Positions 2,381 through 57,699 are shown, counted from the first letter of the stretch. The stretch: DNA of 57,699 nt from Malacoraja senta (GCA_038087875.1 JAXLNO010003819.1:6302-64000); one strand, 5' to 3'. Notes: generated by a model from the letters alone, not told the origin. Numbers and translations are program-made.

Positions 2381-2648
2381 GCTACGTACGAGCGCTCTAC
2401 GATTCCCCTTTTCCTTCCGGGACGCAATGATGACGAGCGGAGGGCGATGGAAAGGGTTGGATGATCTTTAAAGATAATTTCATTCGGTACTTGCCAGCGC
2501 CTACCCCCCCACCTTTATGTAGCTTTTAGGGGAGGGGTATCATTAATGCCATTACACCGCGAATCAGTACCAGGATAGGGGGTATTTTCGAGTATGAACA
2601 CAGTAAGGTGATGTTCTGTTGTTTAACTTCGTCCCCGGATTCTTGCAG

Positions 2649-2778
2649 GGCATTGTCGAGGCGACGCCCTTTCTCAGACCCCAGCAATGATAACAGTGAG
2701 TGAAGGCGATGACGCACCGTTGAAGTGCAACTACACAGCTACAATCACGAGCAATCTTGGACTAATCTGGTACCGTCA
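2649..2778 (+). pseudogene. V pseudogene, lineage E: leaderless and truncated after WYR
   Basis: Acceptor cttgcag at 2648, then GHCRGDALSQTPAMITVSEGDDAPLKCNYTATITSNLGLIWYR, then repeat DNA. The leader and 5' intron are replaced by the CR1. No RSS. Confidence 0.85.
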
Positions 2779-2779
2779 T

Positions 2780-3195
2780 GGCCCTGTCCCACGGTGCGAG
2801 TCCACCCACGTGTGATCTCGAGTTTAAAACAAATCAAACTCGTGGTAATCACGTAGCGGGAACGTCGGAACTCGTAACTCTAACGGCAGGTACTCGGGAA
2901 ACTTGTTAACTCGTGAAAATCTTTGAACATGCTGAAAGATTTCCACGAGTCAGAGTTATTCTTGAAGTAAAAAATCTAAACTTTTAAACTCGTTGTAAGA
3001 ACGTAGTAGCCCGTGAGTTTACCGTAGTGACTCGTGAGTCTACCGTGGGCACTCTTTAACTCAGCTGGACAGGCAGCATCTCTGCAGAGAAGGAATGGGT
3101 GACGGGATGACGTTTCCAAAATTCTGCTGCGTCTTCGTGTTACTCCAGCACTGTGTGTTCACTTTTCGTCAACCAGCATCTGCCCTTTCTTGTGT
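2780..3195. mobile_element. MITE-like element (2780-3049) plus fragment of a common chondrichthyan interspersed repeat (~3057-3195)
   Basis: Left end ggccctgtCCCACGGT and right end ACCGTGGG are inverted, with many internal ACTCGT motifs. Followed by aactcagctggacaggcagcatctctgcagagaaggaatgggtgacg...gttactccagca. Family not verified. Confidence 0.6.
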
Positions 3196-3652
3196 ATGAC
3201 ATTATTTGTATCCGTGGCAGTTGATTGTCGCTCAAAATACCAGGCTTTTAAACACGACACAACACTAACCTATGAACTATGAACTGTCTTTCGGTGCACT
3301 TAGCAATTCAAGCTTTTTAATGCACATGGATTACGTTATTAATTTATTGTATTTTGTTTATTATTTATCATACTTCAGGCCTTGTCTCTCCTGTGACTTC
3401 ATGAAACAGAAAACAAAGGAGGTTTGAGATGATTGGCAACTGAGAAGCAGTGAGTTGATTGGCGGAATTCAGCGAGTGAGGTAAGTCGGGGGGGTTGGAG
3501 AACACATTCGCTCTGTGCCGAGGGGATGTGCCGTCGTCAAAAATAAACCAATGAATTGAGAGCCTAGACCACAGCACTTTCACAATATCCGATTAAACAT
3601 ATTTCCCGATGAGAACATTTCAGTTCATATTCACTCTCAAAGCAATCACAAC

Positions 3653-4395
3653 ATGTTGGCCGTGATTATTTATTCTCTTCTTGCAGCTGCAGCTCTCTTA
3701 ACCGGTAGGTGCACGGCGTTTCCGACCCTGGATATTATATTACTACGGGGCATGATATTTAATCAATCAACTAGTTTGAATGCAATAGAATGACTTAAGA
3801 AAGGGAGTCACACCCATGTTCTACGGACGAGTGGTAAAAGATTCTCTTTTCTCCCTCCCAAGACAGAATGATGACGAGCAGAGGGCAATGGAAAGGGTTA
3901 CAAGATCTTTAAAGACAATTTAATTCAGTAATTCCTACTGCTTTCCCGCCACCTTGATGTGGGTTTTAGGGGAGAGTATTCTTTGCTGCCGTTGTGCCTC
4001 AGATCAGTATCAAGATATGCGGCATTTTCCAGTATCAACATATTGGGATAATGCAATGTAATTTAATTTCTTCCCCTGGCCCTTGCAGGACATTGTCGAG
4101 GCGATGCCGTTTCTCAGACACCAGTAGTGGAAACAGTAAATGAAGGGGATGATGCCCAGTTGAATTGCAACTATACAGCTACAAGCACGAGCGTCCCTGG
4201 ACTAATCTGGTACCGTCAGTATCCCGGCGGATCCCTTGAGTTTCTGCTGCTCAGAACGACATTCAAAGGCGGCCAGAAGAACAATGCCGGGGAACGTTTT
4301 TCTGCGGAGCTCAACCATTTGACAGGAACGGTCCCGCTGACCGTGTCACAAACGCGGCTCCGAGACTCGGCCATGTATTACTGCGCTCTGAACCC
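3653..4395 (+). CDS. TRAV: TCR V segment, lineage A, open
   Basis: Leader 3653-3704 (MLAVIIYSLLAAAALLT), V exon 4089-4395, CDR1 TATSTSVPG, CDR2 RTTFKGGQ, YYCALNP; 23-RSS 4396-4434 CACGGTG-N23-ACAAAAATT. Confidence 0.9.
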
Positions 4396-5007
4396 CACGG
4401 TGGCGCAGAATTGGGCTGAGCCTGTACAAAAATTATCTGAGAACCCCGTCAGGAATCAGCGCGTAAGTGCAGCTTTGTCAGCATCGGCGCGTCCTCGTTG
4501 ATTGCTGCACCCGTCCCAACGCCAGTGTGGTTGCTGCCATTAATACTCGATTTTTAAACATTAAAAACCCATGACAATTGAGTTGAAGAATAGCTTCTAA
4601 CAAACAGACATTAGGTTCGTGAACACTCCACAGCACTAACAGATGAACTATGAACTGTCTGTGGTTGCATTAAGCAGTTCATAACTTATGCACATTGACT
4701 AGGTTGTTAATTGATTGAATTGTGTTTATTATTTCTCATACTGCATACGATGACGCCATGGGACAGAACGCAAAGGAGGTTTGAGATGATTGGGCAACAA
4801 ATGCAGGAATGTGATTGGCGGAATTAAGAAACAATGTTAATTCGGGGAGTTGGAGAACAAATTAGCTCTGGGCTGAGGGGACATGACGCTGTCAAGAATA
4901 AGCCAATGAATAGAGAGCCGAGACCACAGCTCTTTCACAATATCAGATTAAACTTGTTTCCGGGTGAGACCATTTCAGTTCATATTCACTCTCAATGCAA
5001 TTACAAC

Positions 5008-5879
5008 ATGCTGCCCGTGACAATTTATTGTCTTCTTGCAGCTGCAGCTCTCTTAACGGGTAAGTTCAGGACGTTTCGAAGCCTGTACATTATATTACTG
5101 TAGGGCATGGCATTTAATCAATGAAATACCCGGCATGCAATAGAATGACTTTAGAATGGGAATCAGTGAGAGGACTAAACGAAGAGCACAATAAGAATAT
5201 AGATACTGTTCCCCACAAAGTGATGTTAGGAAATTTGAGGTGAATTCCCAGAAATATTGATGGAAACCAGCGCCTATGGTGAAGCATCGGAGAGTTAGAA
5301 AACTCCCTTGTGCTAAGTACTAGCGCTCAGCGATTCCTCTTCCCCTCTCGAGATCCAATGATGACGAGCAGATGGCGATGGAAAGGGGCGGATGATTTTT
5401 TAAAGATCATTTCATTCGGTTATTCACAGCGCCTTCCCCCCCCCATCTTTATTTAGCTTTTAGGGGAGGGAGATCTTTGTTGCCGTTCTACCTCAGATCA
5501 GTATAATTAATATGAATATGAGCAGAATGAGGTGATGTTGTGTTTTCTAACCTCGTACCCGGGCTCTTGCAGGATATTGTAGAGGCGACGCCGTTTCTCA
5601 GACACCATTAGTGGTAACAGTGAGTGAAGGGGAAGATGCACAGTTGAACTGCAACTATACAACTGCAAGCACGAGCATTCTTGGACTAATCTGGTACCGT
5701 CAGTATCCCGGTGGATCCCTTGAGTTTCTGCTGCTCAGAACGAAAATCGAAGCCGTCCAGAAGAACAATGCTGGAGAACGTTTTTCTGCGGAGCTGAACC
5801 ATTCGACAGGAACGGTCCCGCTGACGGTATCACAAACGCGGCTCCGAGACGCGGCAATGTATTACTGCGCCCAGAGCCC
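5008..5879 (+). CDS. TRAV: TCR V segment, lineage B, open
   Basis: Leader 5008-5059, V exon 5573-5879, CDR1 TTASTSILG, CDR2 RTKIEAVQ, YYCAQSP; 23-RSS 5880-5918 CACGGTG-N23-ACAAAAACT. Confidence 0.9.
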
Positions 5880-6239
5880 CACGGTGGCGCAGAATTGGGT
5901 TGAGCCTGCACAAAAACTACCAGTGCACCCACTCATGTATCACCGCGTAAACACAACTTTCTCAGCATCGGCGCGTCCTCGTTCATTGCTGCACCCGTCC
6001 CATCGCCAGTGTCATTAATACTCGATTTTTAAATATTAAAAAACCCATGACAATTGGGTTGAAGAATAGCTTCTAACAAACAAATATTAGGTTCTTGAAC
6101 ACTACACAGCACTAACAGAAGAACTATGAAATGTCTTCGGTTGCATTAAGCATTTCATGCATCTTATGCACATGGACTTGGTTGTTAATTTATTGAATTT
6201 TGTTTATTGTATATTATACTTCAGGCCTTGCCCCTCCTG

Positions 6240-6480
6240 TGACGCCATGGAACAGAAAAAAGGAGGGTTGAGATGATTGGCCAACAAAAGCAATGGTGTG
6301 ATTGGCGGAATTAAGAAACTGAGTTAATTCGGGGAGTTGGAGAACAAATTTGCTCCGCGCCGACAGGATGTGACGCTGTCACGAATAAGCCAATGAATGA
6401 AGAGCCTAGACCACAGCTCTTTCACAATATCAGATTAAACCTGTTTCCGGGTGAGCGCATTTCAGTTCATATTCACTCTC
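6240..6480 (+). promoter_or_regulatory. Putative V promoter (representative copy; repeated before every A-D unit)
   Basis: TGACGC 6240, ATTGG 6276 and 6301, GTGAC-GCT-GTCAC 6370-6382, CCAAT 6390, RUNX-type ACCACA 6410, ETS-type TTTCCGG 6444, Inr-like TTCAGTTC about 30 bp before the ATG. Confidence 0.55.
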
Positions 6481-6494
6481 ACTGCAATTACAAC

Positions 6495-7352
6495 ATGCTG
6501 GCCTTGACAATGTACTGGCTTCTTACAGCTGCAGCTCTCTTAACCGGTAAGTTCACGAGGTTTCCAATAATGTAGGGCATGATATTTAAGCAACCAAATA
6601 CCTTGAATGCAACAGAACGACTTTAGAAAAGGAGTCCGTCTGAGGACAGTAAACGATGAGCGCAGTAGGAAAAAAGATGCAGTTTCACAGTAATTGATGT
6701 TCGGAAATTTGATGTGAGTTTCCAGGTTAATTGTTGGAAAGCAGCGCCGACGGAGAAGCATTGAAGCGTTAGAACACACCGGTGGTCCCCGTACGAATGC
6801 TCTACGATTCCCCTTTTCCTCCCCGGAAGCAATAACAACGTCCAGTACGATGGAACGGGTTGGATTATCTTTAAAGATAAATTTATTCGGTAATTCCCAG
6901 CGCCTTTCCGCCCATCTTTATTTAGCTTTTAGGGGAGGGGTATGTTTGATGTCATTGTACCTCATATCAGTATGAGGATGAGGGGTATTCTGAAGTATGA
7001 GCTGAGTTAGGTGATGTTGTGTTATTTATCCCCGGACTCTTGCAGGGAATTGTCGAGGCGACGCCGTTTCTCAGACAACGGCAGCGGTTACAGTGAGTGA
7101 AGGGGATGATACAAAATTGAGCTGCAACTATACAGCTACAAGCACGGTCACTCCTGGACTGATCTGGTACCGTCGGTATCCCGGCGGATCCCTTGAGTTT
7201 CTTCTGCTGAGAACGACATTCAAAGGCGGCCAGAAGAGCAATGCCGGGGAACGTTTTTCTGCGGAGCTCAAACATTTGAGAGGAACGGTTCCGCTGACCG
7301 TGTCACAAACGCGGCACCGAGACTCGGCGATGCATTACTGCGCTCCGAACCC
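6495..7352 (+). CDS. TRAV: TCR V segment, lineage C, open frame with atypical HYCAP end
   Basis: Leader 6495-6546 (MLALTMYWLLTAAALLT), V exon 7046-7352, CDR1 TATSTVTPG, CDR2 RTTFKGGQKSN, AMHYCAPNP; RSS 7353-7391 with heptamer CACGGTA. Confidence 0.8.
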
Positions 7353-7964
7353 CACGGTAGCGCAGAATTGGGCTGAGCCTGTACAAAAATTATCTGAGAA
7401 CTCCGTCAGGAATCAGCGCGTAAGCGCAGCTTTGTCAGCATCGGCGCGTCCTCGTTGATTGCTGCACCCGTCCCAACGCCAGTGTGGTAGCTGCCATTAA
7501 TACTCGATTTTTAAACATTAAAAACCCATGACAATTGAGTTGAACAATAGCTTCTAACAAACAGACATTAGGTTCGTGAACACTCCACAGCACTAACAGA
7601 TGAACTATGAACAGTCTGTGGTTGCATTAAGCAGTTCATAACTTATGCACATGGACTAGGTTGTTAATTGATTGAATTGTGTTTATTATTTGTCATACTG
7701 CATACTATGACGCCATGGGACAGAAAACAAAGGAGGTTTGAGATGATTGGGCATCAAAAGCAATGATGCGATTGGCGGAATTAAGAAACAATGTTAATTC
7801 GGGGAGTTGGAGAACAAATTAGCTCTTCGCTGATGGGACGTGACGCTGTCAAGAATAAGCCAATGAATAGAGAGCCGAGACCACAGCTCTTTCACAATAT
7901 CAGATTAAACCTGTTTCCGTGTGAGACCATTTTGGTTCATATTCACTCTCAATGCAATTACAAC

Positions 7965-8836
7965 ATGCTGCCCGTGACAATTTATTGTCTTCTTGCAGCT
8001 GCAGCTCTCTTAACGGGTAAGTTCAGGACGTTTCGAAGCCTGTACATTATATTACTGTAGGGCATGGCATTTAATCAATGAAATACCCGGCATGCAATAG
8101 AATGACTTTAGAATGGGAATCAGTGAGAGGACTAAACGAAGAGCACAATAAAAATATAGATGCAGTTCCACACAAAGTGATGTTAGGAAATTTGAGGTGA
8201 ATTCCCAGAAATATTGTTGGAAACCAGCGCCTATGGTGAAGCATCGGAGAGTTAGAATACTCCCTTGTGCTAAGTACTAGCGCTCAGCGATTCCTCTTCC
8301 CATCTCGAGATCCAATGATGACGAGCAGATGGCGATGGAAAGGGGCGGATGATTTTTTAAAGATAATTTCATTCGGTTATTCACAGCCCCTTTCCCCCCC
8401 CATCTTTATTTAGCTTTTAGGGGAGGGAGATCTTTGTTGCCGTTCTACCTCAGATCAGTATAATCAATATGAATATGAGCAGAATGACGTGATGTTGTGT
8501 TTTCTAACCTCGTTCGCGGGCTCTTGCAGGATATTGTAGAGGCGACGCCGTTTCTCAGACACCAGTAGTGGTAACAGTGAGTGAAGGGGAAGATGCACAG
8601 TTGAACTGCAACTATACATCTGCAAGCACGAGCAATCTTCGACTAATCTGGTACCGTCAGTATCCCGGCGGATCCCTTGAGTTTCTGCTGCTCAGAACGA
8701 AAATCGAAGCCGTCCAGAAGAACAATGCTGGAGAACGTTTTTCTGCGGAGCTCAACCATTCGACAGGAACGGTCCCGCTGACGATATCACAAACGCGGCT
8801 CCGAGACGCGGCAATGTATTACTGCGCCCTGAGCCC
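7965..8836 (+). CDS. TRAV: TCR V segment, lineage B' (CDR1 TSASTSNLR), open
   Basis: Leader 7965-8016, V exon 8530-8836, YYCALSP; 23-RSS 8837-8875. Confidence 0.9.
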
Positions 8837-9460
8837 CACGGTGGCGCAGAATTGGGCTCAGCCTGCACAAAAACTACCAGCGCACTCAATCATGTATCAC
8901 CGCGTAAACACAACTTTCTCAGCATCGGCGCGTCCTCGTTGATTGCTGCACCCGTCCCATCGCCAGTGTGTTTGCTGTCATTAATACTCGATTTTTAAAT
9001 ATTAAAAAACCCATGACAATTGGGTTGAAGAATAGCTTCTAACAAACAAATATTAGGTTCTTGAACACTACACAGCACTAACAGAAGAACTATGAAATGT
9101 CTTCGGTTGCATTAAGCATTTCATGCATCTTATGCACATGGACTTGGTTGTTAATTTATTGAATTTTGTTTATTGTTTGTTATACTTCAGGCCTTGCCCC
9201 TCCTGTGACGCCATGGGACAGAAAAAAGGAGGGTTGAGATGATTGGCCAACAAAAGCAATGGTGTGATTGGCGGAATTAAGAAACTGAGTTAATTCGGGG
9301 AGTTGGAGAACAAATTAGCTCCGCGCCGACAGGATGTGACGCTGTCACGAATAAGCCAATGAATGAAGAGCCTAGACCACAGCTCTTTCACAATATCAGA
9401 TTAAACCTGTTTCCGGGTGAGCGCATTTCAGTTCATATTCACTCTCAATGCAATTGCAAC

Positions 9461-10317
9461 ATGCTGGCCTTGACAATGTATTGGCTTCTTACAGCTGCAG
9501 CTCTCTTAACCGGTAAGTTCACGAGGTTTCCAATAATGTAGGGCATGATATTTAAGCAACCAAATACCTTGAATGCAACAGAACGACTTTAGAAAAGGAG
9601 TCCGTCTGAGGACAGTAAACGATGAGCGCAGTAGGAAAAAAGATGCAGTTTCACAGTAATTGATGTTCGGAAATTTGAGGTGAGTTTCCAGGTTAATTGT
9701 TGGAAAGCAGCCCCGACGGAGAAGCATCGAAGCGTTAGAACACACCGGTGGTCCCCGTACGAATGCTCTACGATTCCCCTTTTCCTCCCCGGAAGCAATA
9801 ACGTCGTCCAGTACGATGAAACGGATTGGTTTATCTTTAAAGATAAATTACTCGGTAATTCCCAGCGCCTTTCCGCCCATCGTTATTTAGCTTTTAGGGG
9901 AGGGGTATGTTTGATGTCATTGTACCTCATATCAGTATGAGGATGAGGGGTATTCTGAAGTATGAGCTGAGCTAGGTTATATTGTGTTATTAATCCCCGG
10001 ACTCTTGCAGGGAATTGTCGAGGCGACGCCGTTTCTCAGACACCGGCAGCGGTTACAGTGAGTGAAGGGGATGATACAAAATTGAGCTGCAAGTATACAG
10101 CTACAAGCACGGTATCCCCTGGACTAATCTGGTACCGTCAGTATGCCGGCGGATGCCTTGAGTTTCTGCTGCTCAGAACGAAAATCGAAGCCGCCCAGAA
10201 GAACAGTGCAGGTGAACGTTTTTCTGCGGAGCTCAACCATTCGACAGGAACGGTCCCGCTGACCGTGTCACAAACGCGGCTCCGAGACTCGGCGATGTAT
10301 TACTGCGCACTGAACCC
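9461..10317 (+). CDS. TRAV: TCR V segment, lineage C' (extra Cys in FR2), open
   Basis: Leader 9461-9512, V exon 10011-10317, CKYTATSTVSPG, WYRQYAGGCLEF, RTKIEAAQKNS; 23-RSS 10318-10356. Confidence 0.9.
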
Positions 10318-10942
10318 CACGGTGGCGCAGTGGTGGGCTGAGCCTGCACAAAAACTGCCAGTGCACCCACTCATGTATCACCGCGTCAGCGCAGCTTTGT
10401 CAGCATCGGCGCGTCCTCGTTGATTGCTGCACCGTTCCCAACGCCAGTGTGTTTACTGTCATTAATACTCGATTTTTAAATATTAAAAACCCATGACAAT
10501 TGGGTTGAAGAATAGCTTCTAACAAACAAATATTAGGTTCTTGAACTCTACACAGCACTGAAAAATGAACTATGAAATGTCTTCGCTTGCATTAAGCACT
10601 TCATTCATCTTATGCACATGGACTAGGTTGTTAATTTATTGAATTTTGTTTATTGTATATTATACTTCAGGCCTTGCCCCTCCTGTGACGCCGTGGAACA
10701 GAAAACAAAGGAGGTTTGAAATGATTGGGCAACAAAAGCAATGACGTGATTGGCGGAATTAAGAAACTGAGTGAATTAGGGGAGTTGGAGAACAAATTAG
10801 CTCCGCGCCGACGGGATGTGACGCTGTCAAGAATAAGCCAACGAATGAAGAACCTAGACCACAGCCCTTTCACAATATCAGATTAAACCTGTTTCCGGGT
10901 GAGCGCATTTCAGTTCATATTCACTCTCAATGCAATTACAAC

Positions 10943-11774
10943 ATGCTGGCCGTGACAATTTATTGGCTTCTTACAGCTGCAGCTCTTTTAACGGGTAAGT
11001 ACAAGACGTTTCCAAGCCTGAATATTATATTACTGTGGGGCATGGTATTTAATCAATAAAATGCCTTGCATGCAATGGAATGACTTTAGAAAGTGAGTCA
11101 GTGAGGGTACAATAAACGAAGAGTACAATAAGAATATAGATGCAGTTCCGACCAAAGTGCTGTAAGGATTTTGAGATGAGTTTCCAGGTATATTAGACCA
11201 CGCTCGTGTTCTAAGGTCGTGCGCTCAGCAATTCCTCTCCTCCTCCCGAGATGCAATGATCACGAGCAGGTGGCGATGGAAAGGGGTGGATGATTTTTAA
11301 ATATAGTTTCATTCGGTAATTCACAGCGCGTTTTCTCCCACCTTCATTTAGGTTTGAGTGCAGGGAGATCTTTGTTGCCGTTCTACCTCAGATCAGTACC
11401 AGGATAAGGTGAGCGTGAGCAGAATGCGGTGATATTCTTGTTTTTAACTTCGTTCCCGGACTCTTGCAGAGCATTGTCGAGGCGACGCCGTTTCTCAGAC
11501 ACCAGTAGTGGTAACAATGAGCGAAGGGGATGATGCCCAGTTGAACTGCAACTATACAGCTACAAGCACGAACAATCTTGTATTAATGTGGTACCGGCAG
11601 TATCCCGGCGGATCCCTTCAATTTCTGGTTCAGAACGAAATTCGAAGCCGCCCAGAAGAACAGTGCTGGAGAACGTTTGGCTGCGGAGCTCAACCATTTG
11701 ACAGGAACAGTCCCGCTGACTGTGTCGCAAACGCGGCTCCGAGACGCGGCGATGTATTACTGCGCCCTGAGTCC
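10943..11774 (+). pseudogene. V pseudogene, lineage D (2-nt deletion in FR2/CDR2; RSS spacer shortened)
   Basis: Leader 10943-10994, V exon 11470-11774. tttctg-gttc-agaacg versus intact tttctg-ctgctc-agaacg (~11628) shifts the frame. RSS remnant 11775-11801 is CACGGAG-N11-ACATAAACT. Confidence 0.9.
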
Positions 11775-11848
11775 CACGGAGGCAGCGATTGTACATAAAC
11801 TACCATTTCCGGATTTCAGTTCATATTCACTCTCCATGTAATTGAAAC

Positions 11849-12549
11849 ATGCTGTCATTGACTATTTATTCGCTTCTTATAGCTGCAGCTCTCTTAACCG
11901 GTATGTTCACGACGTTTCCAAGCCTGTATATTATGTTACTTTAGGGCATGATATCTCATCAATCAAATACATTGAATGCAATGGAATCACGTTAGAAAGC
12001 CATTCAATGGGAGGATAGTAAGTGAAGAGTACAAAGAGAAATATAGATGCAGTTCCTCAATAGGGATGTGAGGGGATTTGAGGCGTTTCCAGGTTAATAG
12101 CTGGAAACTGGCCCCGGCTGGGTAGAGTCCTGCAGTTGGAACACACCGGTGTTCTACGTAGGAGCGCTCTACGATTCCCCTTTTCCTTCCGGGACGCAAT
12201 GATGACGAGCGGAGTGCGATGGAAAGGGTTGGATGATCTTTAAAGATAATTTCATTCGGTAATTGCCAGCGCCTACCCCCCACCTTTATGTAGCTTTTAG
12301 GGGAGGGGTATCATTAATGCCATTGCACCTCGAATCAGTACCAGGATAGGGGGTATTTTCGAATATGAACACAGTAAGGTGATGTTCCGTTGTTTAACTT
12401 CGTCCCCGGATTCTTGCAGGGCATTGTCGAGGCGACGCCGTTTCTCAGACCCCAGCAATGATAACAGTGAGTGAAGGCGATGACGCACCGTTGAAGTGCA
12501 ACTACACAGCTACAATCACGAGCAATCTTGGACTAATCTGGTACCGTCA
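11849..12549 (+). pseudogene. V pseudogene, lineage E (promoter deleted, V truncated after WYR)
   Basis: Intact leader 11849-11900 (MLSLTIYSLLIAAALLT), partial V exon 12420-12549, then MITE; no Cys104 and no RSS. Confidence 0.88.
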
Positions 12550-12550
12550 T

Positions 12551-12966
12551 GGCCCTGTCCCACGGTGCGAGTCCACCCACGTGTGATCCCGAGTTTAAAA
12601 CAAATCAAACTCGTGGTAATCACGTAGCGGGAACGTCGGAACTCGTAACTCTAACGGCAGGTACTCGGGAAACTTGTTAACTCGTGAAAATCTTTCAACA
12701 TGCTGAAAGATTTCCACGAGTCAGAGTTACACTTGAAGTAAAAAAATTAAACTTTTAAACTCGTTGTAAGAACGTAGTAGCCCGTGAGTTTACCGTAGTG
12801 ACTCGTGAGTCTACCGTGGGCACTCTTTAACTCAGCTGGACAGGCAGCATCTCTGCAGAGATGGAATGGGTGACGGGATGACGTTTCCAAAATTCTGCTG
12901 CGTCTTTGTGTTACTCCAGCACTGTGTGTTCACTTTTTGTCAACCAGCATCTGCCCTTTCTTGTGT
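12551..12966. mobile_element. MITE-like element plus repeat fragment (copy 2)
   Basis: Same sequence as 2780-3195. Confidence 0.6.
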
Positions 12967-13422
12967 ATGACATTATTTGTATCCGTGGCAGTTGATTGTC
13001 GCTCAAATACCAGGCTTTTAAACACGGCAGAACACTAACCTATGAACTATGAACTGTCTTTCGGTGCACTTAGCAATTCAAGCTTTTTAATGCACATGGA
13101 TTACGTTATTAATTTATTGTATTTTGTTTATTATTTATCATACTTCAGGCCTTGTCTCTCCTGTGACTTCATGAAACAGAAAACAAAGGAGGTTTGAGAT
13201 GATTGGCAACTGAGAAGCAGTGAGTTGATTGGCGGAATTCAGCGAGTGAGGTAAGTCGGGGGGGTTGGAGAACACATTCGCTCTGTGCCGAGGGGATGTG
13301 CCGTCGTCAAAAATAAACCAATGAATTGAGAACCTAGACCACAGCTCTTTCACAATATCCGATTAAACATATTTCCCGATGAGAACATTTCAGTTTATAT
13401 TCACTCTCAAAGCAATCACAAC

Positions 13423-19361: not shown

Positions 19362-19362
19362 T

Positions 19363-43332: not shown

Positions 43333-43333
43333 T

Positions 43334-43749: not shown

Positions 43750-44205
43750 ATGACATTATTTGTATCCGTGGCAGTTGATTGTCGCTCAAATACCAGGCTT
43801 TTAAACACGGCAGAACACTAACCTATGAACTATGAACTGTCTTTCGGTGCACTTAGCAATTCAAGCTTTTTAATGCACATGGATTACGTTATTAATTTAT
43901 TGTATTTTGTTTATTATTTATCATACTTCAGGCCTTGTCTCTCCTGTGACTTCATGAAACAGAAAACAAAGGAGGTTTGAGATGATTGGCAACTGAGAAG
44001 CAGTGAGTTGATTGGCGGAATTCAGCGAGTGAGGTAAGTCGGGGGGGTTGGAGAACACATTCGCTCTGTGCCGAGGGGATGTGCCGTCGTCAAAAATAAA
44101 CCAATGAATTGAGAACCTAGACCACAGCTCTTTCACAATATCCGATTAAACATATTTCCCGATGAGAACATTTCAGTTTATATTCACTCTCAAAGCAATC
44201 ACAAC

Positions 44206-47056: not shown

Positions 47057-47914
47057 ATGCTGGCCTTGACAATGTATTGGCTTCTTACAGCTGCAGCTCT
47101 CTTAACCGGTAAGTTCACGACGTTTCCAATAATGTAGGGCATGATATTTAAGCAACCAAATACCTTGAATGCAACAGAACGACTTTAGAAAAGGAGTCCG
47201 TCTGAGGACAGTAAACGATGAGCGCAGTAGGATAAAAGATGCAGTTTCACAGTAATTGATGTTCGGAAATTTGAGGTGAGTTTCCACGTTAATTGTTGGA
47301 AAGCAGCCCCGACGGAGAAGCATCGAAGCGTTAGAACACACCGGTGGTCCCCGTACGAGTGCTCTACGATTCCCCTTTTCCTCCCCGGAAGCAATAACAA
47401 CGTCCAGTACGATGGAACGGGTTGGATTATCTTTAAAGATAAATTTATTCGGTAATTCCCAGCGCCTTTCCGCCCATCTTTATTTAGCTTTTAGGGGAGG
47501 GGTATGTTTGATGTCATTGTACCTCATATCAGTATGAGGATGAGGGGTATTCTGAAGTATGAGCTGAGTTAGGTGATGTTGTGTTATTTATCCCCGGACT
47601 CTTGCAGGGAATTGTCGAGGCGACGCCGTTTCTCAGTCAACGGCAGCGGTTACAGTGAGTGAAGGGGATGATACAAAATTGAGCTGCAACTATACAGCTA
47701 CAAGCACGGTCACTCCTGGACTGATCTGGTACCGTCGGTATCCCGGCGGATCCCTTGAGTTTCTTCTGCTGAGAACGACATTCAAAGGCGGCCAGAAGAA
47801 CAATGCTGGAGAACGTTTTTCTGCGGAGCTCAACCATTCGACAGGAACGGTCCCGCTGACGGTATCACAAACGCGGCTCCGAGACGCGGCAATGTATTAC
47901 TGCGCCCTGAGCCC
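47057..47914 (+). CDS. TRAV: TCR V segment, C/B chimera (C''), open
   Basis: Leader 47057-47108, V exon 47608-47914; 23-RSS 47915-47953. Confidence 0.9.
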
Positions 47915-48538
47915 CACGGTGGCGCAGAATTGGGCTGAGCCTGCACAAAAACTACCAGTGCACCCACTCATGTATCACCGCGTAAACACAACTTTCTCAG
48001 CATCGGCGCGTCCTCGTTGATTGCTGCACCCGTCCCATCGCCAGTGTGTTTGCTGTCATTAATACTCGATTTTTAAATATTAAAAAACCCATGACAATTG
48101 GGTTGAAGAATAGCTTCTAACAAACAAATATTAGGTTCTTGAACACTACACAGCACTAACAGAAGAACTATGAAATGTCTGCGGTTGCATTAAGCATTTC
48201 ATGCATCTTATGCACATGGACCTGGTTGTTAATTTATTGAATTTTGTTTATTGTATATTATACTTCAGGCCTTGCCTGTCCTGTGACGCCATGGAACAGA
48301 AAAAAGGAGGTTTGAGATGATTGGCCAACAAAAGCAATGGTGTGATTGGCGGAATTAAGAAACTGAGTTAATTCGGGGAGTTGGAGAACAAATTTGCTCC
48401 GCGCCGACAGGATGTGACGCTGTCACGAATAAGCCAATGAACGAAGAGCCTAGACCACAGCTCTTTCACAATATCAGATTAAACCTGTTTCCGGGTGAGC
48501 GCATTTCAGTTCATATTCACTCTCAATGCAATTACAAC

Positions 48539-49395
48539 ATGCTGGCCTTGACAATGTATTGGCTTCTTACAGCTGCAGCTCTCTTAACCGGTAAGTTCAC
48601 GAGGTTTCCAATAATGTAGGGCATGATATTTAAGCAACCAAATACCTTGAATGCAACAGAACGACTTTAGAAAAGGAGTCCGTCTGAGGACAGTAAACGA
48701 TGAGCGCAGTAGGAAAAAAGATGCAGTTTCACAGTAATTGATGTTCGGAAATTTGAGGTGAGTTTCCAGGTTAATTGTTGGAAAGCAGCCCCGACGGAGA
48801 AGCATCGAAGCGTTAGAACACACCGGTGGTCCCCGTACGAATGCTCTACGATTCCCCTTTTCCTCCCCGGAAGCAATAACGTCGTCCAGTACGATGAAAC
48901 GGATTGGTTTATCTTTAAAGATAAATTACTCGGTAATTCCCAGCGCCTTTCCGCCCATCGTTATTTAGCTTTTAGGGGAGGGGTATGTTTGATGTCATTG
49001 TACCTCATATCAGTATGAGGATGAGGGGTATTCTGAAGTATGAGCTGAGCTAGGTTATATTGTGTTATTAATCCCCGGACTCTTGCAGGGAATTGTCGAG
49101 GCGACGCCGTTTCTCAGACACCGGCAGCGGTTACAGTGAGTGAAGGGGATGATACAAAATTGAGCTGCAAATATACAGCTACAAGCACGGTATCCCCTGG
49201 ACTAATCTGGTACCGTCAGTATGCCGGCGGATGCCTTGAGTTTCTGCTGCTCAGAACGAAAATCGAAGCCGCCCAGAAGAACAGTGCCGGTGAACGTTTT
49301 TCTGCGGAGCTCAACCATTCGACAGGAACGGTCCCGCTGACCGTGTCACAAACGCGGCTCCGAGACTCGGCGATGTATTACTGCGCACTGAACCC
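48539..49395 (+). CDS. TRAV: TCR V segment, lineage C' (extra Cys), open
   Basis: Leader 48539-48590, V exon 49089-49395; 23-RSS 49396-49434. Confidence 0.9.
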
Positions 49396-50020
49396 CACGG
49401 TGGCGCAGTGGTGGGCTGAGCCTGCACAAAAACTGCCAGTGCACCCACTCATGTATCACCGCGTCAGCGCAGCTTTGTCAGCATCGGCGCGTCCTCGTTG
49501 ATTGCTGCACCGTTCCCAACGCCAGTGTGTTTACTGTCATTAATACTCGATTTTTAAATATTAAAAACCCATGACAATTGGGTTGAAGAATAGCTTCTAA
49601 CAAACAAATATTAGGTTCTTGAACTCTACACAGCACTGAAAAATGAACTATGAAATGTCTTCGCTTGCATTAAGCACTTCATTCATCTTATGCACATGGA
49701 CTAGGTTGTTAATTTATTGAATTTTGTTTATTGTATATTATACTTCAGGCCTTGCCCCTCCTGTGACGCCGTGGAACAGAAAACAAAGGAGGTTTGAAAT
49801 GATTGGGCAACAAAAGCAATGACGTGATTGGCGGAATTAAGAAACTGAGTGAATTAGGGGAGTTGGAGAACAAATTAGCTCCGCGCCGACGGGATGTGAC
49901 GCTGTCAAGAATAAGCCAACGAATGAAGAACCTAGACCACAGCCCTTTCACAATATCAGATTAAACCTGTTTCCGGGTGAGCGCATTTCAGTTCATATTC
50001 ACTCTCAATGCAATTACAAC

Positions 50021-50852
50021 ATGCTGGCCGTGACAATTTATTGGCTTCTTACAGCTGCAGCTCTTTTAACGGGTAAGTACAAGACGTTTCCAAGCCTGAA
50101 TATTATATTACTGTGGGGCATGGTATTTAATCAATAAAATGCCTTGCATGCAATGGAATGACTTTAGAAAGTGAGTCAGTGAGGGTACAATAAACGAAGA
50201 GTACAATAAGAATATAGATGCAGTTCCGACCAAAGTGCTGTAAGGATTTTGAGATGAGTTTCCAGGTATATTAGACCACGCTCGTGTTCTAAGGTCGTGC
50301 GCTCAGCAATTCCTCTCCTCCTCCCGAGATGCAATGATCACGAGCAGGTGGCGAAGGAAAGGGGTGGATGATTTTTAAATATAGTTTCATTCGGTAATTC
50401 ACAGCGCGTTTTCTCCCACCTTCATTTAGGTTTGAGTGCAGGGAGATCTTTGTTGCCGTTCTACCTCAGATCAGTACCAGGATAAGGTGAGCGTGAGCAG
50501 AATGCGGTGATATTCTTGTTTTTAACTTCGTTCCCGGACTCTTGCAGAGCATTGTCGAGGCGACGCCGTTTCTCAGACACCAGTAGTGGTAACAATGAGC
50601 GAAGGGGATGATGCCCAGTTGAACTGCAACTATACAGCTACAAGCACGAACAATCTTGTATTAATGTGGTACCGGCAGTATCCCGGCGAATCCCTTCAAT
50701 TTCTGGTTCAGAACGAAATTCGAAGCCGCCCAGAAGAACAGTGCTGGAGAACGTTTGGCTGCGGAGCTCAACCATTTGACAGGAACAGTCCCGCTGACTG
50801 TGTCGCAAACGCGGCTCCGAGACGCGGCGATGTATTACTGCGCCCTGAGTCC
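50021..50852 (+). pseudogene. V pseudogene, lineage D (PGES variant)
   Basis: Leader 50021-50072, V exon 50548-50852, frameshift; 11-spacer RSS 50853-50879. Confidence 0.9.
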
Positions 50853-50926
50853 CACGGAGGCAGCGATTGTACATAAACTACCATTTCCGGATTTCAGTTC
50901 ATATTCACTCTCCATGTAATTGAAAC

Positions 50927-51627
50927 ATGCTGTCATTGACTATTTATTCGCTTCTTATAGCTGCAGCTCTCTTAACCGGTGTGTTCACGACGTTTCCAAG
51001 CCTGTATATTATGTTACTTTAGGGCATGATATCTCATCAATCAAATACATTGAATGCAATGGAATCACGTTAGAAAGCCATTCAATGGGAGGATAGTAAG
51101 TGAAGAGTACAAAGAGGAATATAGATGCAGTTCCTCAATAGGGATGTGAGGGGATTTGAGGCGTTTCCAGGTTAATAGCTGGAAACTGGCCCCGGCTGGG
51201 TAGAGTCCTGCAGTTGGAACACACCGGTGTTCTACGTAGGAGCGCTCTACGATTCCCCTTTTCCTTCCGGGACGCAATGATGACGAGCGGAGTGCGATGG
51301 AAAGGGTTGGATGATCTTTAAAGATAATTTCATTCGGTAATTGCCAGCGCCTACCCCCCACCTTTATGTAGCTTTTAGGGGAGGGGTATCATTAATGCCA
51401 TTGCACCTCGAATCAGTACCAGGATAGGGGGTATTTTCGAATATGAACACAGTAAGGTGATGTTCCGTTGTTTAACTTCGTCCCCGGATTCTTGCAGGGC
51501 ATTGTCGAGGCGACGCCGTTTCTCAGACCCCAGCAATGATAACAGTGAGTGAAGGCGATGACGCACCGTTGAAGTGCAACTACACAGCTACAATCACGAG
51601 CAATCTTGGACTAATCTGGTACCGTCA
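50927..51627 (+). pseudogene. V pseudogene, lineage E
   Basis: Leader 50927-50978 (donor gtgtgt), partial V exon 51498-51627. Confidence 0.88.
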
Positions 51628-51628
51628 T

Positions 51629-52044
51629 GGCCCTGTCCCACGGTGCGAGTCCACCCACGTGTGATCCCGAGTTTAAAACAAATCAAACTCGTGGTAATCA
51701 CGTAGCGGGAACGTCGGAACTCGTAACTCTAACGGCAGGTACTCGGGAAACTTGTTAACTCGTGAAAATCTTTCAACATGCTGAAAGATTTCCACGAGTC
51801 AGAGTTACTCTTGAAGTAAAAAAATTAAACTTTTAAACTCGTTGTAAGAACGTAGTAGCCCGTGAGTTTACCGTAGTGACTCGTGAGTCTACCGTGGGCA
51901 CTCTTTAACTCAGCTGGACAGGCAGCATCTCTGCAGAGATGGAATGGGTGACGGGATGACGTTTCCAAAATTCTGCTGCGTCTTTGTGTTACTCCAGCAC
52001 TGTGTGTTCACTTTTTGTCAACCAGCATCTGCCCTTTCTTGTGT
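51629..52044. mobile_element. MITE-like element plus repeat fragment (copy 6)
   Basis: Same sequence as 2780-3195. Confidence 0.6.
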
Positions 52045-52500
52045 ATGACATTATTTGTATCCGTGGCAGTTGATTGTCGCTCAAATACCAGGCTTTTAAA
52101 CACGGCAGAACACTAACCTATGAACTATGAACTGTCTTTCGGTGCACTTAGCAATTCAAGCTTTTTAATGCACATGGATTACGTTATTAATTTATTGTAT
52201 TTTGTTTATTATTTATCATACTTCAGGCCTTGTCTCTCCTGTGACTTCATGAAACAGAAAACAAAGGAGGTTTGAGATGATTGGCAACTGAGAAGCAGTG
52301 AGTTGATTGGCGGAATTCAGCGAGTGAGGTAAGTCGGGGGGGTTGGAGAACACATTCGCTCTGTGCCGAGGGGATGTGCCGTCGTCAAAAATAAACCAAT
52401 GAATTGAGAACCTAGACCACAGCTCTTTCACAATATCCGATTAAACATATTTCCCGATGAGAACATTTCAGTTCATATTCACTCTCAAAGCAATCACAAC

Positions 52501-53243
52501 ATGTTGGCCGTGATTATTTATTCTCTTCTTGCAGCTGCAGCTCTCTTAACCGGTAGGTGCACGGCGTTTCCGACCCTGGATATTATATTACTACGGGGCA
52601 TGATATTTAATCAATCAACTAGTTTGAATGCAATAGAATGACTTAAGAAAGGGAGTCACACCCATGTTCTACGGACGAGTGCTGAAAGATTCTCTTTTCT
52701 CCCTCCCAAGACAGAATGATGACGAGCAGAGGGCAATGGAAAGGGTTACATGATCTTTAAAGACAATTTAATTCAGTAATTCCCAGTGCTTTCCCGCCAC
52801 CTTGATGTGGGTTTTAGGGGAGAGTATTCTTTGCTGCCGTTGTGCCTCAGATCAGTATCAAGATATGCGGCATTTTCCAGTATCAACATATTGGGATAAT
52901 GCAATGTAATTTAATTTCTTTCCCTGGCCCTTGCAGGACATTGTCGAGGCGATGCCGTTTCTCAGACACCAGTAGTGGAAACAGTAAATGAAGGGGATGA
53001 TGCCCAGTTGAATTGCAACTATACAGCTACAAGCACGAGCGTCCCTGGACTAATCTGGTACCGTCAGTATCCCGGCGGATCCCTTGAGTTTCTGCTGCTC
53101 AGAACGACATTCAAAGGCGGCCAGAAGAACAATGCCGGGGAACGTTTTTCTGCGGAGCTCAACCATTTGACAGGAACGGTCCCGCTGACCGTGTCACAAA
53201 CGCGGCTCCGAGACTCGGCCATGTATTACTGCGCTCTGAACCC
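52501..53243 (+). CDS. TRAV: TCR V segment, lineage A, open
   Basis: Leader 52501-52552, V exon 52937-53243; 23-RSS 53244-53282. Confidence 0.9.
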
Positions 53244-53855
53244 TACGGTGGCGCAGAATTGGGCTGAGCCTGTACAAAAATTATCTGAGAACCCCGTCAG
53301 GAATCAGCGCGTAAGCGCAGCTTTGTCAGCATCGGCGCGTCCTCGTTGATTGCTGCACCCGTCCCAACGCCAGTGTGGTTGCTGCCATTAATACTCGATT
53401 TTTAAACATTAAAAACCCATGACAATTGAGTTGAAGAATAGCTTCTAACAAACAGACATTAGGTTCGTGAACACTCCACAGCACTAACAGATGAACTATG
53501 AACTGTCTGTGGTTGCATTAAGCAGTTCATAACTTATCCACATGGACTAGGTTGTTAATTTATTGAATTGTGTTTATTATTTGTCATACTGCATACTATG
53601 ACGCCATGGGACAGAAAACAAAGGAGGTTTGAGATGATTGGGCATCAAAAGCAATGATGCGATTGGCGGAATTAAGAAACAATGTTAATTCGGGGAGTTG
53701 GAGAACAAATTAGCTCTTCGCTGATGGGACGTGACGCTGTCAAGAATAAGCCAATGAATAGAGAGCCGAGACCACAGCTCTTTCACAATATCAGATTAAA
53801 CCTGTTTCCGTGTGAGACCATTTTGGTTCATATTCACTCTCAATGCAATTACAAC

Positions 53856-54727
53856 ATGCTGACCGTGACAATTTATTGTCTTCTTGCAGCTGCAGCTCTC
53901 TTAACGGGTAAGTTCAGGACGTTTCGAAGCCTGTACATTATATTACTGTAGGGCATGGTATTTAATCAATGAAATACTCTGCATGCAATAGAATGACTTT
54001 AGAATGGGAATCAGCGAGAGGACTAAACGAAGAGCACAATAAGAATATAGATGCTGTTCCCCACAAAGTGATGTTAGGAAATTTGAGGTGAATTCCCAGA
54101 AATATTGTTGGAAACCAGCGCCTATGGTGAAGCATCGGAGAGTTAGAAAACTCCCTTGTGCTAAGTACTAGCGCTCAGCGATTCCTCTTCCCCTCTCGAG
54201 ATCCAATGATGACGAGCAGATGGCGATGGAAAGGGGCGGATGATTTTTTAAAGATAATTTCATTCGGTTATTCACAGCGCCTTTCCCCCCCCATCTTTAT
54301 TTAGCTTTTAGGGGAGGGAGATCTTTGTTGCCGTTCTACCTCAGATCAGTATAATTAATATGAATATGAGCAGAATGAGGTGATGTTGTGTTTTCTAACC
54401 TCGTACCCGGGCTCTTGCAGGATATTGTAGAGGCGACGCCGTTTCTCAGACACCAGTAGTGGTAACAGTGAGTGAAGGGGAAGATGCACAGTTGAACTGC
54501 AACTATACAACTGCAAGCACGAGCATTCTTGGACTAATCTGGTACCGTCAGTATCCCGGCGGATCCCTTGAGTTTCTGCTGCTCAGAACGAAAATCGAAG
54601 CCGTCCAGAAGAACAATGCTGGAGAACGTTTTTCTGCGGAGCTCAACCATTCGACAGGAACGGTCCCGCTGACGGTATCACAAACGCGGCTCCGAGACGC
54701 GGCAATGTATTACTGCGCCCTGAACCC
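53856..54727 (+). CDS. TRAV: TCR V segment, lineage B, open
   Basis: Leader 53856-53907, V exon 54421-54727; 23-RSS 54728-54766. Confidence 0.9.
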
Positions 54728-55351
54728 CACGGTGGCGCAGAATTGGGCTGAGCCTGCACAAAAACTACCAGTGCACCCACTCATGTATCACCGCGTAAAC
54801 ACAACTTTCTCAGCATCGGCGCGTCCTCGTTGATTGCTGCACCCGTCCCATCGCCAGTGTGTTTGCTGTCATTAATACTCGATTTTTAAATATTAAAAAA
54901 CCCATGACAATTAGGTTGAAGAATAGCTTCTAACAAACAAATATTAGGTTCTTGAACACTACAAAGCACTAACAGAAGAACTATGAAATGTCTTCGGTTG
55001 CATTAAGCATTTCATGCATCTTATGCACATGGACTTGGTTGTTAATTTATTGAATTTTGTTTATTGTTTATTATACTTCAGGCCTTGCCCCTCCTGTGAC
55101 GCCATGGAACAGAAAAAAGGAGGGTTGAGATGATTGGCCAACAAAAGCAATGGTGTGATTGGCGGAATTAAGAAACTGAGTTAATTCGGGGAGTTGGAGA
55201 ACAAATTAGCTCCGCGCCAACAGGATGTGACGCTGTCACGAATAAGCCAATCAATGAAGAGCCTAGACCACAGCTCTTTCACAATATCAGATTAAACCTG
55301 TTTCCGGGTGAGCGCATTTCAGTTCATATTCACTCTCAATGCAATTACAAC

Positions 55352-56209
55352 ATGCTGGCCTTGACAATGTATTGGCTTCTTACAGCTGCAGCTCTCTTAA
55401 CCGGTAAGTTCACGACGTTTCCAATAATGTAGGGCATGATATTTAAGCAACCAAATACCTTGAATGCAACAGAACGACTTTAGAAAAGGAGTCCGTCTGA
55501 GGACAGTAAACGATGAGCGCAGTAGGATAAAAGATGCAGTTTCACAGTAATTGATGTTCGGAAATTTGAGGTGAGTTTCCACGTTAATTGTTGGAAAGCA
55601 GCCCCGACGGAGAAGCATCGAAGCGTTAGAACACACCGGTGGTCCCCGTACGAGTGCTCTACGATTCCCCTTTTCCTCCCCGGAAGCAATAACAACGTCC
55701 AGTACGATGGAACGGGTTGGATTATCTTTAAAGATAAATTTATTCGGTAATTCCCAGCGCCTTTCCGCCCATCTTTATTTAGCTTTTAGGGGAGGGGTAT
55801 GTTTGATGTCATTGTACCTCATATCAGTATGAGGATGAGGGGTATTCTGAAGTATGAGCTGAGTTAGGTGATGTTGTGTTATTTATCCCCGGACTCTTGC
55901 AGGGAATTGTCGAGGCGACGCCGTTTCTCAGTCAACGGCAGCGGTTACAGTGAGTGAAGGGGATGATACAAAATTGAGCTGCAACTATACAGCTACAAGC
56001 ACGGTCACTCCTGGACTGATCTGGTACCGTCGGTATCCCGGCGGATCCCTTGAGTTTCTTCTGCTGAGAACGACATTCAAAGGCGGCCAGAAGAACAATG
56101 CTGGAGAACGTTTTTCTGCGGAGCTCAACCATTCGACAGGAACGGTCCCGCTGACGGTATCACAAACGCGGCTCCGAGACGCGGCAATGTATTACTGCGC
56201 CCTGAGCCC
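55352..56209 (+). CDS. TRAV: TCR V segment, C/B chimera (C''), open
   Basis: Leader 55352-55403, V exon 55903-56209; 23-RSS 56210-56248. Confidence 0.9.
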
Positions 56210-56833
56210 CACGGTGGCGCAGAATTGGGCTGAGCCTGCACAAAAACTACCAGTGCACCCACTCATGTATCACCGCGTAAACACAACTTTCTCAGCATCG
56301 GCGCGTCCTCGTTGATTGCTGCACCCGTCCCATCGCCAGTGTGTTTGCTGTCATTAATACTCGATTTTTAAATATTAAAAAACCCATGACAATTGGGTTG
56401 AAGAATAGCTTCTAACAAACAAATATTAGGTTCTTGAACACTACACAGCACTAACAGAAGAACTATGAAATGTCTGCGGTTGCATTAAGCATTTCATGCA
56501 TCTTATGCACATGGACCTGGTTGTTAATTTATTGAATTTTGTTTATTGTATATTATACTTCAGGCCTTGCCTGTCCTGTGACGCCATGGAACAGAAAAAA
56601 GGAGGGTTGAGATGATTGGCCAACAAAAGCAATGGTGTGATTGGCGGAATTAAGAAACTGAGTTAATTCGGGGAGTTGGAGAACAAATTAGCTCCGCGCC
56701 GACAGGATGTGACGCTGTCACGAATAAGCCAATGAATGAAGAGCCTAGACCACAGCTCTTTCACAATATCAGATTAAACCTGTTTCCGGGTGAGCGCATT
56801 TCAGTTCATATTCACTCTCAATGCAATTACAAC

Positions 56834-57691
56834 ATGCTGGCCTTGACAATGTATTGGCTTCTTACAGCTGCAGCTCTCTTAACCGGTAAGTTCCCGACGT
56901 TTCCAATAATGTAGGGCATGATATTTAAGCAACCAAATACCTTGAATGCAACAGAACGACTTTAGAAAAGGAGTCCGTCTGAGGACAGTAAACGATGAGC
57001 GCAGTAGGATAAAAGATGCAGTTTCACAGTAATTGATGTTCGGAAATTTGATGTGAGTTTCCACGTTAATTGTTGGAAAGCAGCCCCGACGGAGAAGCAT
57101 CGAAGCGTTAGAACCCACCGGTGGTCCCCGTACGAGTGCTCTACGATTCCCCTTTTCCTCCCCGGAAGCAATAACAACGTCCAGTACGATGGAACGGGTT
57201 GGATTATCTTTAAAGATAAATTTATTCGGTAATTCCCAGCGCCTTTCCGCCCAGCTTTATTTAGCTTTTAGGGGAGGGGTATGTTTGATGTCATTGTACC
57301 TCATATCAGTATGAGGATGAGGGGTATTCTGAAGTATGAGCTGAGTTAGGTGATGTTGTGTTATTTATCCCCGGACTCTTGCAGGGAATTGTCGAGGCGA
57401 CGCCGTTTCTCAGTCAACGGCAGCGGTTACAGTGAGTGAAGGGGATGATACAAAATTGAGCTGCAACTATACAGCTACAAGCACGGTCACTCCTGGACTG
57501 ATCTGGTACCGTCGGTATCCCGGCGGATCCCTTGAGTTTCTGCTGCTCAGAACGAAAATCGAAGCCGTCCAGAAGAACAATGCTGGAGAACGTTTTTCTG
57601 CGGAGCTCAACCATTCGACAGGAACGGTCCCGCTGACGGTATCACAAACGCGGCTCCGAGACGCGGCAATGTATTACTGCGCCCTGAACCC
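56834..57691 (+). CDS. TRAV: TCR V segment, C/B chimera (C'''), open; RSS cut by window end
   Basis: Leader 56834-56885, V exon 57385-57691, heptamer CACGGTG 57692-57698. Confidence 0.85.
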
Positions 57692-57699
57692 CACGGTGG

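Follow-up and report, generated by a model that had tools for sequence, protein, structure and literature searches.

Nested higher-order repeats in an alpha/delta-like T-cell-receptor V array of the skate Malacoraja senta

How does a single family of T-cell-receptor (TCR) variable (V) segments come to be repeated 40 times on one strand, with a unit about every 1.48 kb, and are the copies genuine germline genes? The question is raised by a stretch of the Malacoraja senta genome (GCA_038087875.1, JAXLNO010003819.1:6302-64000), hereafter the window, which comprises 57,699 bases without any N in one gap-free contig. The array within it is probably a genuine germline V-region stretch of a skate TCR locus of the alpha/delta type, in which one family was multiplied by repeated unequal homologous crossing-over between 1.48-kb monomers. 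The architecture of the array, the status of its genes, the identity among the copies and their approximate number were observed directly.

Monomers, cassettes and a super-repeat

Self-BLAST and an analysis of 500-bp tiles identified very long same-strand matches that span the window from position 2382 to its end, and the nearest paralogue of most tiles is 99.6-100% identical. A total of 40 V-exon splice acceptors were located, all on the + strand, the first at 2649 and the last at 57385, and in 40/40 units the acceptor motif TTGCAG is followed by the common V-exon start. A V-exon probe matched 40 times and a leader probe 39 times, again exclusively on the + strand. The density is 0.72 per kb (40 units in 55.3 kb) and the acceptor-to-acceptor spacing is 1439-1487 bp, with the exception of the five D units (950 bp). 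Tandem Repeats Finder reported no repeat over the window because the longest period it handles is 500, which leaves it blind to this array.

Based on an all-against-all alignment, the monomers form five or six classes. Identity is 66-88% between classes or neighbours and 97-100% between monomers of the same class in different cassettes. The units, numbered from the left, follow the order E A B C B C D / E A B C D / E A B C C D / E A B C C C B C B C D / E A B C C D / E A B C C ..., in which the motif E-A-B-(C'')-C'-D recurs six times. The cassettes differ in size (5, 6, 7 and 11 units) and also carry diagnostic substitutions, and the exact cassette periods are 6812 bp and 8295/8298 bp. A maximum-likelihood tree of the monomers groups them by class with strong support and a median terminal branch of 0.0007, and units 32 and 38 are identical across 1482 bp. 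Within class E, the edge unit E1 is the most diverged (~98%), with the other E units being 99.6-100% alike. The blocks discussed below are as follows:

Whole V array, 2382..57699, +: continues past the window end; defined by self-BLAST, tiles and 40 acceptors
Cassette c2 (E-A-B-C'-D), 12420..19231, +: 6812 bp, period 6812
Cassette c3 (E-A-B-C''-C'-D), 19232..27529, +: 8298 bp, 99.78% identical to c5
Cassette c5, 43203-51497, +: 8295 bp, counterpart of c3
Super-repeat copy S1 (units 2-23), 4400..35182, +: 30,783 bp
Super-repeat copy S2 (units 24-40), 35183..57699, +: cut by the window end; one 6.8-kb cassette fewer than S1

The 30.8-kb super-repeat, with 99.7% identity between its copies, is an additional level beyond the cassettes. 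Positions 4400-14400 match the sequence 30,783 bp further on at 99.71% (29 mismatches, no gaps), and positions 16900-33400 match the sequence 23,970 bp further on at 99.76% over 16.5 kb. The two offsets differ by 6813 bp, which is one five-unit c2 cassette. A block of ~31 kb thus occurs twice in tandem in the window, and one copy is shorter than the other by a cassette. Sister pairs in the monomer tree likewise connect S1 and S2 (3/25, 4/26, 5/27, 6/28, 7/29 and 13/30 to 18/35).

A previous sequence-only reading of this locus had described a ~1.48-kb monomer grouped into a cassette A-B-(C'')-C'-D-E, a density of about 0.7 V per kb and cassette periods of 6812 and 8294-8298 bp, all of which are reproduced by the unit lengths, the unit order and the values above. 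The self-comparison and monomer phylogeny that it proposed as checks revealed nested blocks and a tree that sorts monomers by class rather than by neighbour. Its description of the locus as built like a satellite holds as an analogy of architecture and of nothing beyond that. The 40 V genes it counted are 40 units, but among them are six 128-nt fragments, five frameshifted units with a damaged recombination signal sequence (RSS), one with a stop, one with a 17-nt deletion and four that are open but carry the heptamer TACGGTG.

Anatomy and status of the V segments

Each V unit starts with a hydrophobic leader exon of 52 nt, read directly from the sequence (e.g., MLTVTIYCLLAAAALLT), followed by a GT donor, an intron of 384-519 nt and the TTGCAG acceptor. 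With this predicted splicing the frame is continuous in 39 units, and the 307-nt V exon is joined to the leader in phase 1. Directly 3' of the V exon lies an RSS composed of CACGGTG, a 23-nt spacer and the nonamer ACAAAAACT or ACAAAAATT, and ~570 nt separate the RSS from the leader of the following unit. A strict scan of the window for CACAGTG or CACTGTG returned 0 sites because the heptamer of this family is CACGGTG, with a G at position 4; a looser scan recovered the sites. The full CACGGTG 23-RSS is found in 20 open units, CACGGTA in two more and TACGGTG in four open units, and unit 40 has CACGGTG with the window ending before its spacer and nonamer.

Pfam recognizes the V exon as a V-set domain (1.3e-15), and the conserved Cys23, Trp41 and Cys104 (LNC...WYRQ...YYC pattern) are present in 27 units. 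Between monomer classes, the ratio of nonsynonymous to synonymous differences per site (pN/pS) is 0.2-0.5 in the framework and 0.9-2.1 in the complementarity-determining regions (CDRs), based on small counts; low framework and high CDR values are the usual V-gene pattern, to which these sequences appear to conform. Among single-V-domain chains in a search of solved structures, those of TCR alpha rank highest (E from 1.6e-14), and no beta, gamma or delta chain is among the top 60 of the PDB search. Two word-index protein searches, in which full-length chains fall outside the length filter, returned almost only one entry (P0001, UniParc UPI000011ADCA), a rearranged protein of a V and a joining (J) segment whose V region is 89% identical to class A. 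Its J part is 19 residues long with an FGKGTKL motif and no evident diversity (D) segment, as in alpha chains, and the entry probably represents a TCR alpha clone of another skate. Few V segments are deposited as proteins, and an exact look-up of the product of one open reading frame (ORF) within the exon found no gene call. The V-set domain, split leader, 23-RSS, TCR alpha matches and 89% identical V-J protein bear out the earlier assignment to a TCR V locus, and judging by the V similarities the array appears to be of an alpha/delta-like V type. The 40 units are listed here, all on the + strand:

Unit 1, 2649..2778, +: class E, 128-nt V-exon relic without leader, array-edge copy, ~98% versus other E
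Unit 2, 3653..4434, +: class A, open, RSS CACGGTG-23-ACAAAAATT
Unit 3, 5008..5918, +: class B, open, good RSS
Unit 4, 6495..7391, +: C/A hybrid, open, heptamer CACGGTA, HYC instead of YYC
Unit 5, 7965..8875, +: class B, open, good RSS
Unit 6, 9461..10356, +: class C', open, good RSS
Unit 7, 10943..11801, +: class D pseudogene, deletions of 2 nt in framework region 2 (FR2) and 12 nt in the RSS
Unit 8, 11849..12549, +: class E, leader and truncated V, then high-copy repeat fragment
Unit 9, 13423..14204, +: class A pseudogene, in-frame stop at V-exon start
Unit 10, 14778..15686, +: class B, open, good RSS
Unit 11, 16272..17168, +: class C', open, good RSS
Unit 12, 17755..18613, +: class D pseudogene
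Unit 13, 18661..19361, +: class E relic
Unit 14, 20235..21016, +: class A, open, heptamer TACGGTG
Unit 15, 21590..22503, +: class B, open, good RSS
Unit 16, 23089..23985, +: class C'' (C 5' part, A-like CDR2, B-like 3' part), open, good RSS
Unit 17, 24571..25466, +: class C', open, good RSS
Unit 18, 26053..26911, +: class D pseudogene
Unit 19, 26959..27659, +: class E relic
Unit 20, 28533..29314, +: class A, open, heptamer TACGGTG
Unit 21, 29888..30797, +: class B, open, good RSS
Unit 22, 31383..32279, +: class C'', open, good RSS
Unit 23, 32865..33761, +: C/B hybrid, open, good RSS
Unit 24, 34338..35217, +: C/A hybrid pseudogene, 17-nt deletion near V-exon start, at the super-repeat seam
Unit 25, 35791..36701, +: class B, open, good RSS
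Unit 26, 37278..38174, +: C/A hybrid, open, heptamer CACGGTA
Unit 27, 38748..39658, +: class B, open, good RSS
Unit 28, 40244..41139, +: class C', open, good RSS
Unit 29, 41726..42584, +: class D pseudogene
Unit 30, 42632..43332, +: class E relic
Unit 31, 44206..44987, +: class A, open, heptamer TACGGTG
Unit 32, 45561..46471, +: class B, open, good RSS; monomer 100% identical to that of unit 38
Unit 33, 47057..47953, +: class C'', open, good RSS
Unit 34, 48539..49434, +: class C', open, good RSS
Unit 35, 50021..50879, +: class D pseudogene
Unit 36, 50927..51627, +: class E relic
Unit 37, 52501..53282, +: class A, open, heptamer TACGGTG; exact match to an 821-nt public contig
Unit 38, 53856..54766, +: class B, open, good RSS
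Unit 39, 55352..56248, +: class C'', open, good RSS
Unit 40, 56834..57699, +: C/B hybrid, open, window stops just past the heptamer

An open leader and V frame with the Cys/Trp/Cys residues was found in 27 units, which encode 12 distinct V-exon proteins (13 if leaders are counted), in agreement with the 27 open members and about a dozen distinct sequences noted previously. The open frame combined with a CAC-type heptamer makes 23 units (one of them cut by the window end) look like usable candidates; their V exons show 15 different nucleotide sequences and specify 11 different V domains. Identical proteins had been said to recur up to five times, which applies to a partial ORF that starts within the exon (units 6, 11, 17, 28 and 34), but no more than four units share an identical full V domain. 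The class C' domains of the same five units (e.g., 25121-25427) also have an extra FR2 cysteine, with GGCLEF in place of the GGSLEF of other classes.

The remaining units are six half-V relics, five frameshifted units with a damaged RSS, two other pseudogenes and four open units with a crippled heptamer, such that ~40% of all units (17/40) are dead or probably unusable. All six E units retain the V exon for its first 128 nt only, with a truncation point common to 6/6 and unrelated sequence beyond it that includes a very high-copy interspersed repeat fragment. The five D units share the 2-nt FR2 deletion and a 12-nt RSS deletion through which the heptamer has lost its end and the spacer half its length. 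What is left of the RSS after this loss (units 7, 12, 18, 29 and 35; e.g., 11470-11801) reads CACGGAG, an 11-nt spacer and ACATAAACT, which is a 12-RSS-like relic on a frameshifted V. The two other pseudogenes are unit 9 (in-frame stop) and unit 24 (17-nt deletion).

The class-A units 14, 20, 31 and 37 are open and have the heptamer TACGGTG, with its first base at 20978, 29276, 44949 and 53244, respectively. The first three bases of the heptamer are the most critical for RAG cleavage, and these four units are therefore probably unusable in rearrangement. In public Logan contigs from two samples of the same species (runs X1 and X2), the X1 contig has T at the C-to-T position of these sites and the X2 contigs have C, which contigs of other classes may explain. 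Units 4 and 26 share the heptamer CACGGTA and have HYC where others have YYC.

Formation of the array and rival explanations

All C-type units agree from the upstream region through the leader and intron into the first third of the V exon. The 3' part is A-like in units 4, 24 and 26, A-then-B-like in units 16, 22, 33 and 39, B-like in units 23 and 40, and of its own type in units 6, 11, 17, 28 and 34. The mosaic V exons (4, 16, 22, 23, 24, 26, 33, 39 and 40) join the CDR1 of one class to the CDR2/FR3 of another with a switch near FR2, and these hybrids and their breakpoints appear to point to exchange between classes. FR2, or its immediate vicinity, is also where the E units are truncated and the D units frameshifted. 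Unit 24 may be the novel junction of the 31-kb duplication, but units 4 and 26 share its C/A hybrid structure.

The mechanism of crossing-over, the sequence of steps, the participation of these segments in rearrangement and any influence they have on the repertoire are inferred. The cassette would first have been built from five or six ancient, diverged monomers (66-88% alike), two of which were dead by then: D, with its frameshift and damaged RSS, and E, truncated beside a transposon fragment. Whole cassettes of 6.8-8.3 kb would then have been copied, and a 30.8-kb block of cassettes would have been copied once more, leaving a difference of ~0.25% between the copies. Out-of-register exchanges may have altered the number of units per cassette, and unequal homologous crossing-over would thus have acted at three scales (monomer, cassette and super-repeat). 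The ~23 units that combine an open frame with a CAC-type 23-RSS would act as ordinary V segments for RAG-mediated joining, and the pseudogenes and the four TACGGTG units would have been amplified as passive passengers. Recent block amplification, as by unequal crossing-over, is favored because the nested collinear blocks are 99.7-100% identical, hybrid monomers are present and lesions are shared class-wide. The same evidence supports the earlier suggestion that very recent unequal crossing-over expanded one family.

Copy number was approached through the k-mer depth of the Logan contigs. In X1, the flank contigs have depths of 27.4 (297-499) and 20.8 (549-1394) and the array contigs 142.7-314.4; in X2, the flank has a depth of 3 and the array 20.9-58.3. 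The array/flank ratio of ~7-15 across the two samples therefore suggests that the assembly does not overstate the array, speaks against a much smaller number of copies and fits an array that extends past the window, with at most ~1.7x the 40 units of the window in the genome. Read depth supporting far fewer copies had been named beforehand as an observation that would count against the array, and contig depth gave no such sign. An 821-nt contig in both runs (depth 205.5 and 24) is identical to copy 37, with most of its k-mers common to all class-A copies, and the depth of class-A contigs is ~8-10x that of the flank compared with six class-A units in the window, although contig depth gives no strict copy number. 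The X1/X2 depth ratio is ~7 for the flank and 7.5-8.7 for the array and thus shows no sign of a copy-number difference, as far as the contig depth of two samples goes. Runs of two other species contain pieces of flank and array at 92-95% identity. This places the origin of the V family and of its neighbour before that of this species; the block copies appear to be far younger than the V family.

Several points weigh against a recently amplified germline TCR alpha/delta array. The window contains V segments only, without a J or constant (C) segment, and the alpha/delta placement rests on V similarity. None of the public runs that contain the stretch is recorded as RNA, and splicing, rearrangement and the C-region partner are putative in this species. 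Logan contig depth is not a copy-number measure, and the flank depth of X2 comes from one 160-nt contig. S1 and S2 differ by ~0.25-0.3% (29 substitutions per 10 kb) and one cassette, which two haplotypes of an unstable array could match, and gene conversion could imitate recent duplication. The last two points lead to alternative origins. S1 and S2, or the near-identical cassettes, might be alleles or mis-looped reads placed in tandem, with a true array about half as long, and one monomer pair that is 100% identical over 1482 bp would fit such an assembly artefact. We consider it quite unlikely, given that the window is one gap-free contig, that the cassettes are structurally distinct (5, 6, 7 and 11 units) with diagnostic substitutions, and that the class-A depth in two runs is ~8-10x the flank where a half-length array predicts ~3x and the assembly 6x.

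An old array that was kept uniform by continuing gene conversion (concerted evolution) would deprive the near-identity of any value for dating the copies. Mosaic V exons show that exchange happens, the edge unit E1 is more diverged than the interior copies, and related species hold flank and family sequences at 92-95%, all of which concerted evolution would accommodate. The identity is, however, collinear over 10-16 kb and includes introns, spacers, transposon relics and pseudogenes, so that block duplication fits better than short conversion tracts, and the classes within a cassette have remained unhomogenised at 66-88%; we regard this explanation as unlikely. A bank of donors as in the chicken, where the array would feed gene conversion of a few rearranging V genes and not rearrange itself, could be suspected from the dense single family and the 17/40 units that are pseudogenes or have a crippled RSS. 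It is very improbable in view of the 23 units that keep leader, splice sites, open frame and CAC heptamer (22 with a complete 23-RSS, unit 40 being cut after the heptamer) and the single orientation of all units, and for shark TCR alpha the diversification mechanism that has been published is somatic hypermutation (PMC5931798).

To the left of the array, an intact V segment of a different family is located at 333-848 (+); its V exon (505-809) is preceded by a leader and followed by the RSS CACACTG-23-ACAAAACCT. It appears to be single-copy by contig depth and has matching contigs with ~5-8% differences in two other species. A very high-copy fragment (~1300-2381, -) resembling a long interspersed nuclear element (LINE) adjoins the exact left edge of the array. 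Pfam returned no match for its two LINE-like ORFs at 1626-2219, which we take to be a CR1-like 3' end on the basis of a CR1-type C-terminal motif. Another interspersed-repeat fragment follows the truncated V exon at 2800-3104 and at the equivalent place in every E unit, and its k-mer depth is 10^5-10^6 in each of the four runs. Its genomic copies run on beyond 3104, where the window sequence departs, and no tRNA-like part was found when looked for in this repeat.

Comparison with known repeat and V-gene systems

The window provides a gap-free map of one expanded skate TCR V family and illustrates extreme birth-and-death at the scale of a single gene, with 1.5-kb monomers, 7-8-kb cassettes and a 31-kb super-repeat that carry pseudogene passengers. 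Inferring somatic hypermutation or clonality from the TCR transcripts of elasmobranchs requires prior knowledge of germline copies that are 0-3 bases apart, a concern about hypermutation calls that was raised earlier for the nurse shark (PMC5931798). In addition, neither short-read mapping nor the counting of V usage will be unambiguous for this family. More tentatively, batoid TCR V regions might contain gene-sized higher-order-repeat arrays that turn over fast enough for copy number to differ between individuals. Exchanges in FR2 might then reshuffle germline CDR1/CDR2 modules, usage might scale with dosage, and near-identical copies might complicate elasmobranch TCR hypermutation calls; we regard this picture as possible but rather doubtful.

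The organization resembles alpha-satellite higher-order repeats in its diverged monomers, near-identical multimers, diverged edges and unit numbers changed by unequal exchange. It differs from them in that the monomer is a V gene or V relic and is present in tens, not thousands, of copies, and there is no evidence for a heterochromatin or centromere role of the array. In the chicken, Reynaud and colleagues are said to have described in 1987 ~25 pseudo-V-lambda segments in ~19 kb upstream of a single functional V. Such chicken pseudo-V segments lack leaders and RSSs, lie in both orientations and serve as gene-conversion donors. Their density is comparable to or higher than that of the skate units, which by contrast are mostly complete and in one orientation.

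The catfish TRB locus has 112 TRBV in 214 kb within 30 subgroups, and its homology units are fewer, shorter and less conserved (PMC8656973). Its V region is likewise compact and nears one V per 2 kb, and the compactness of the skate array is therefore not unique (PMC8656973), but the skate array consists of a single family. The nurse shark draft genome yielded 17 germline alpha/delta V, of which 12 are >93% identical, with two groups of three identical, in one family (PMC5931798). This set hints at a similar near-identical multi-copy V family in an elasmobranch (PMC5931798), although it comes from another species and another V family, and the locus is unassembled and thus offers no spacing or repeat structure for comparison. 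No assembled or annotated skate or shark TRA/TRD V region was found in the literature searched.

The closest counterparts are the homology units of cattle, mouse and catfish. Cattle TRAV/TRDV units are 15-157 kb long with several subgroups, and their pseudogenes expanded 'collaterally' (PMC4289303), which also cites a 410-kb duplication in the mouse; catfish TRAD repeats are 5-12 kb with 1-3 V genes each, and unequal crossing-over was proposed (PMC8656973). As in these loci, an ordered multi-V motif was copied in the skate, its content varies, pseudogenes share lesions and unequal crossing-over is the proposed mechanism. In the skate, by contrast, units of 6.8-8.3 kb lie within a 30.8-kb repeat, V segments of a single family follow one another every 1.48 kb and the copies are 99.7-100% identical. 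The sequence-only reading had set the array apart from usual V loci, which is justified with regard to degree, but V expansion in multi-gene units is well documented in other TRA/TRD loci (PMC4289303, PMC8656973). Overall, V expansion via duplicated multi-gene units is known, and what is unusual here is the combination of a single family, 1.48 kb per gene, three nested levels and copies that are 99.7-100% alike.

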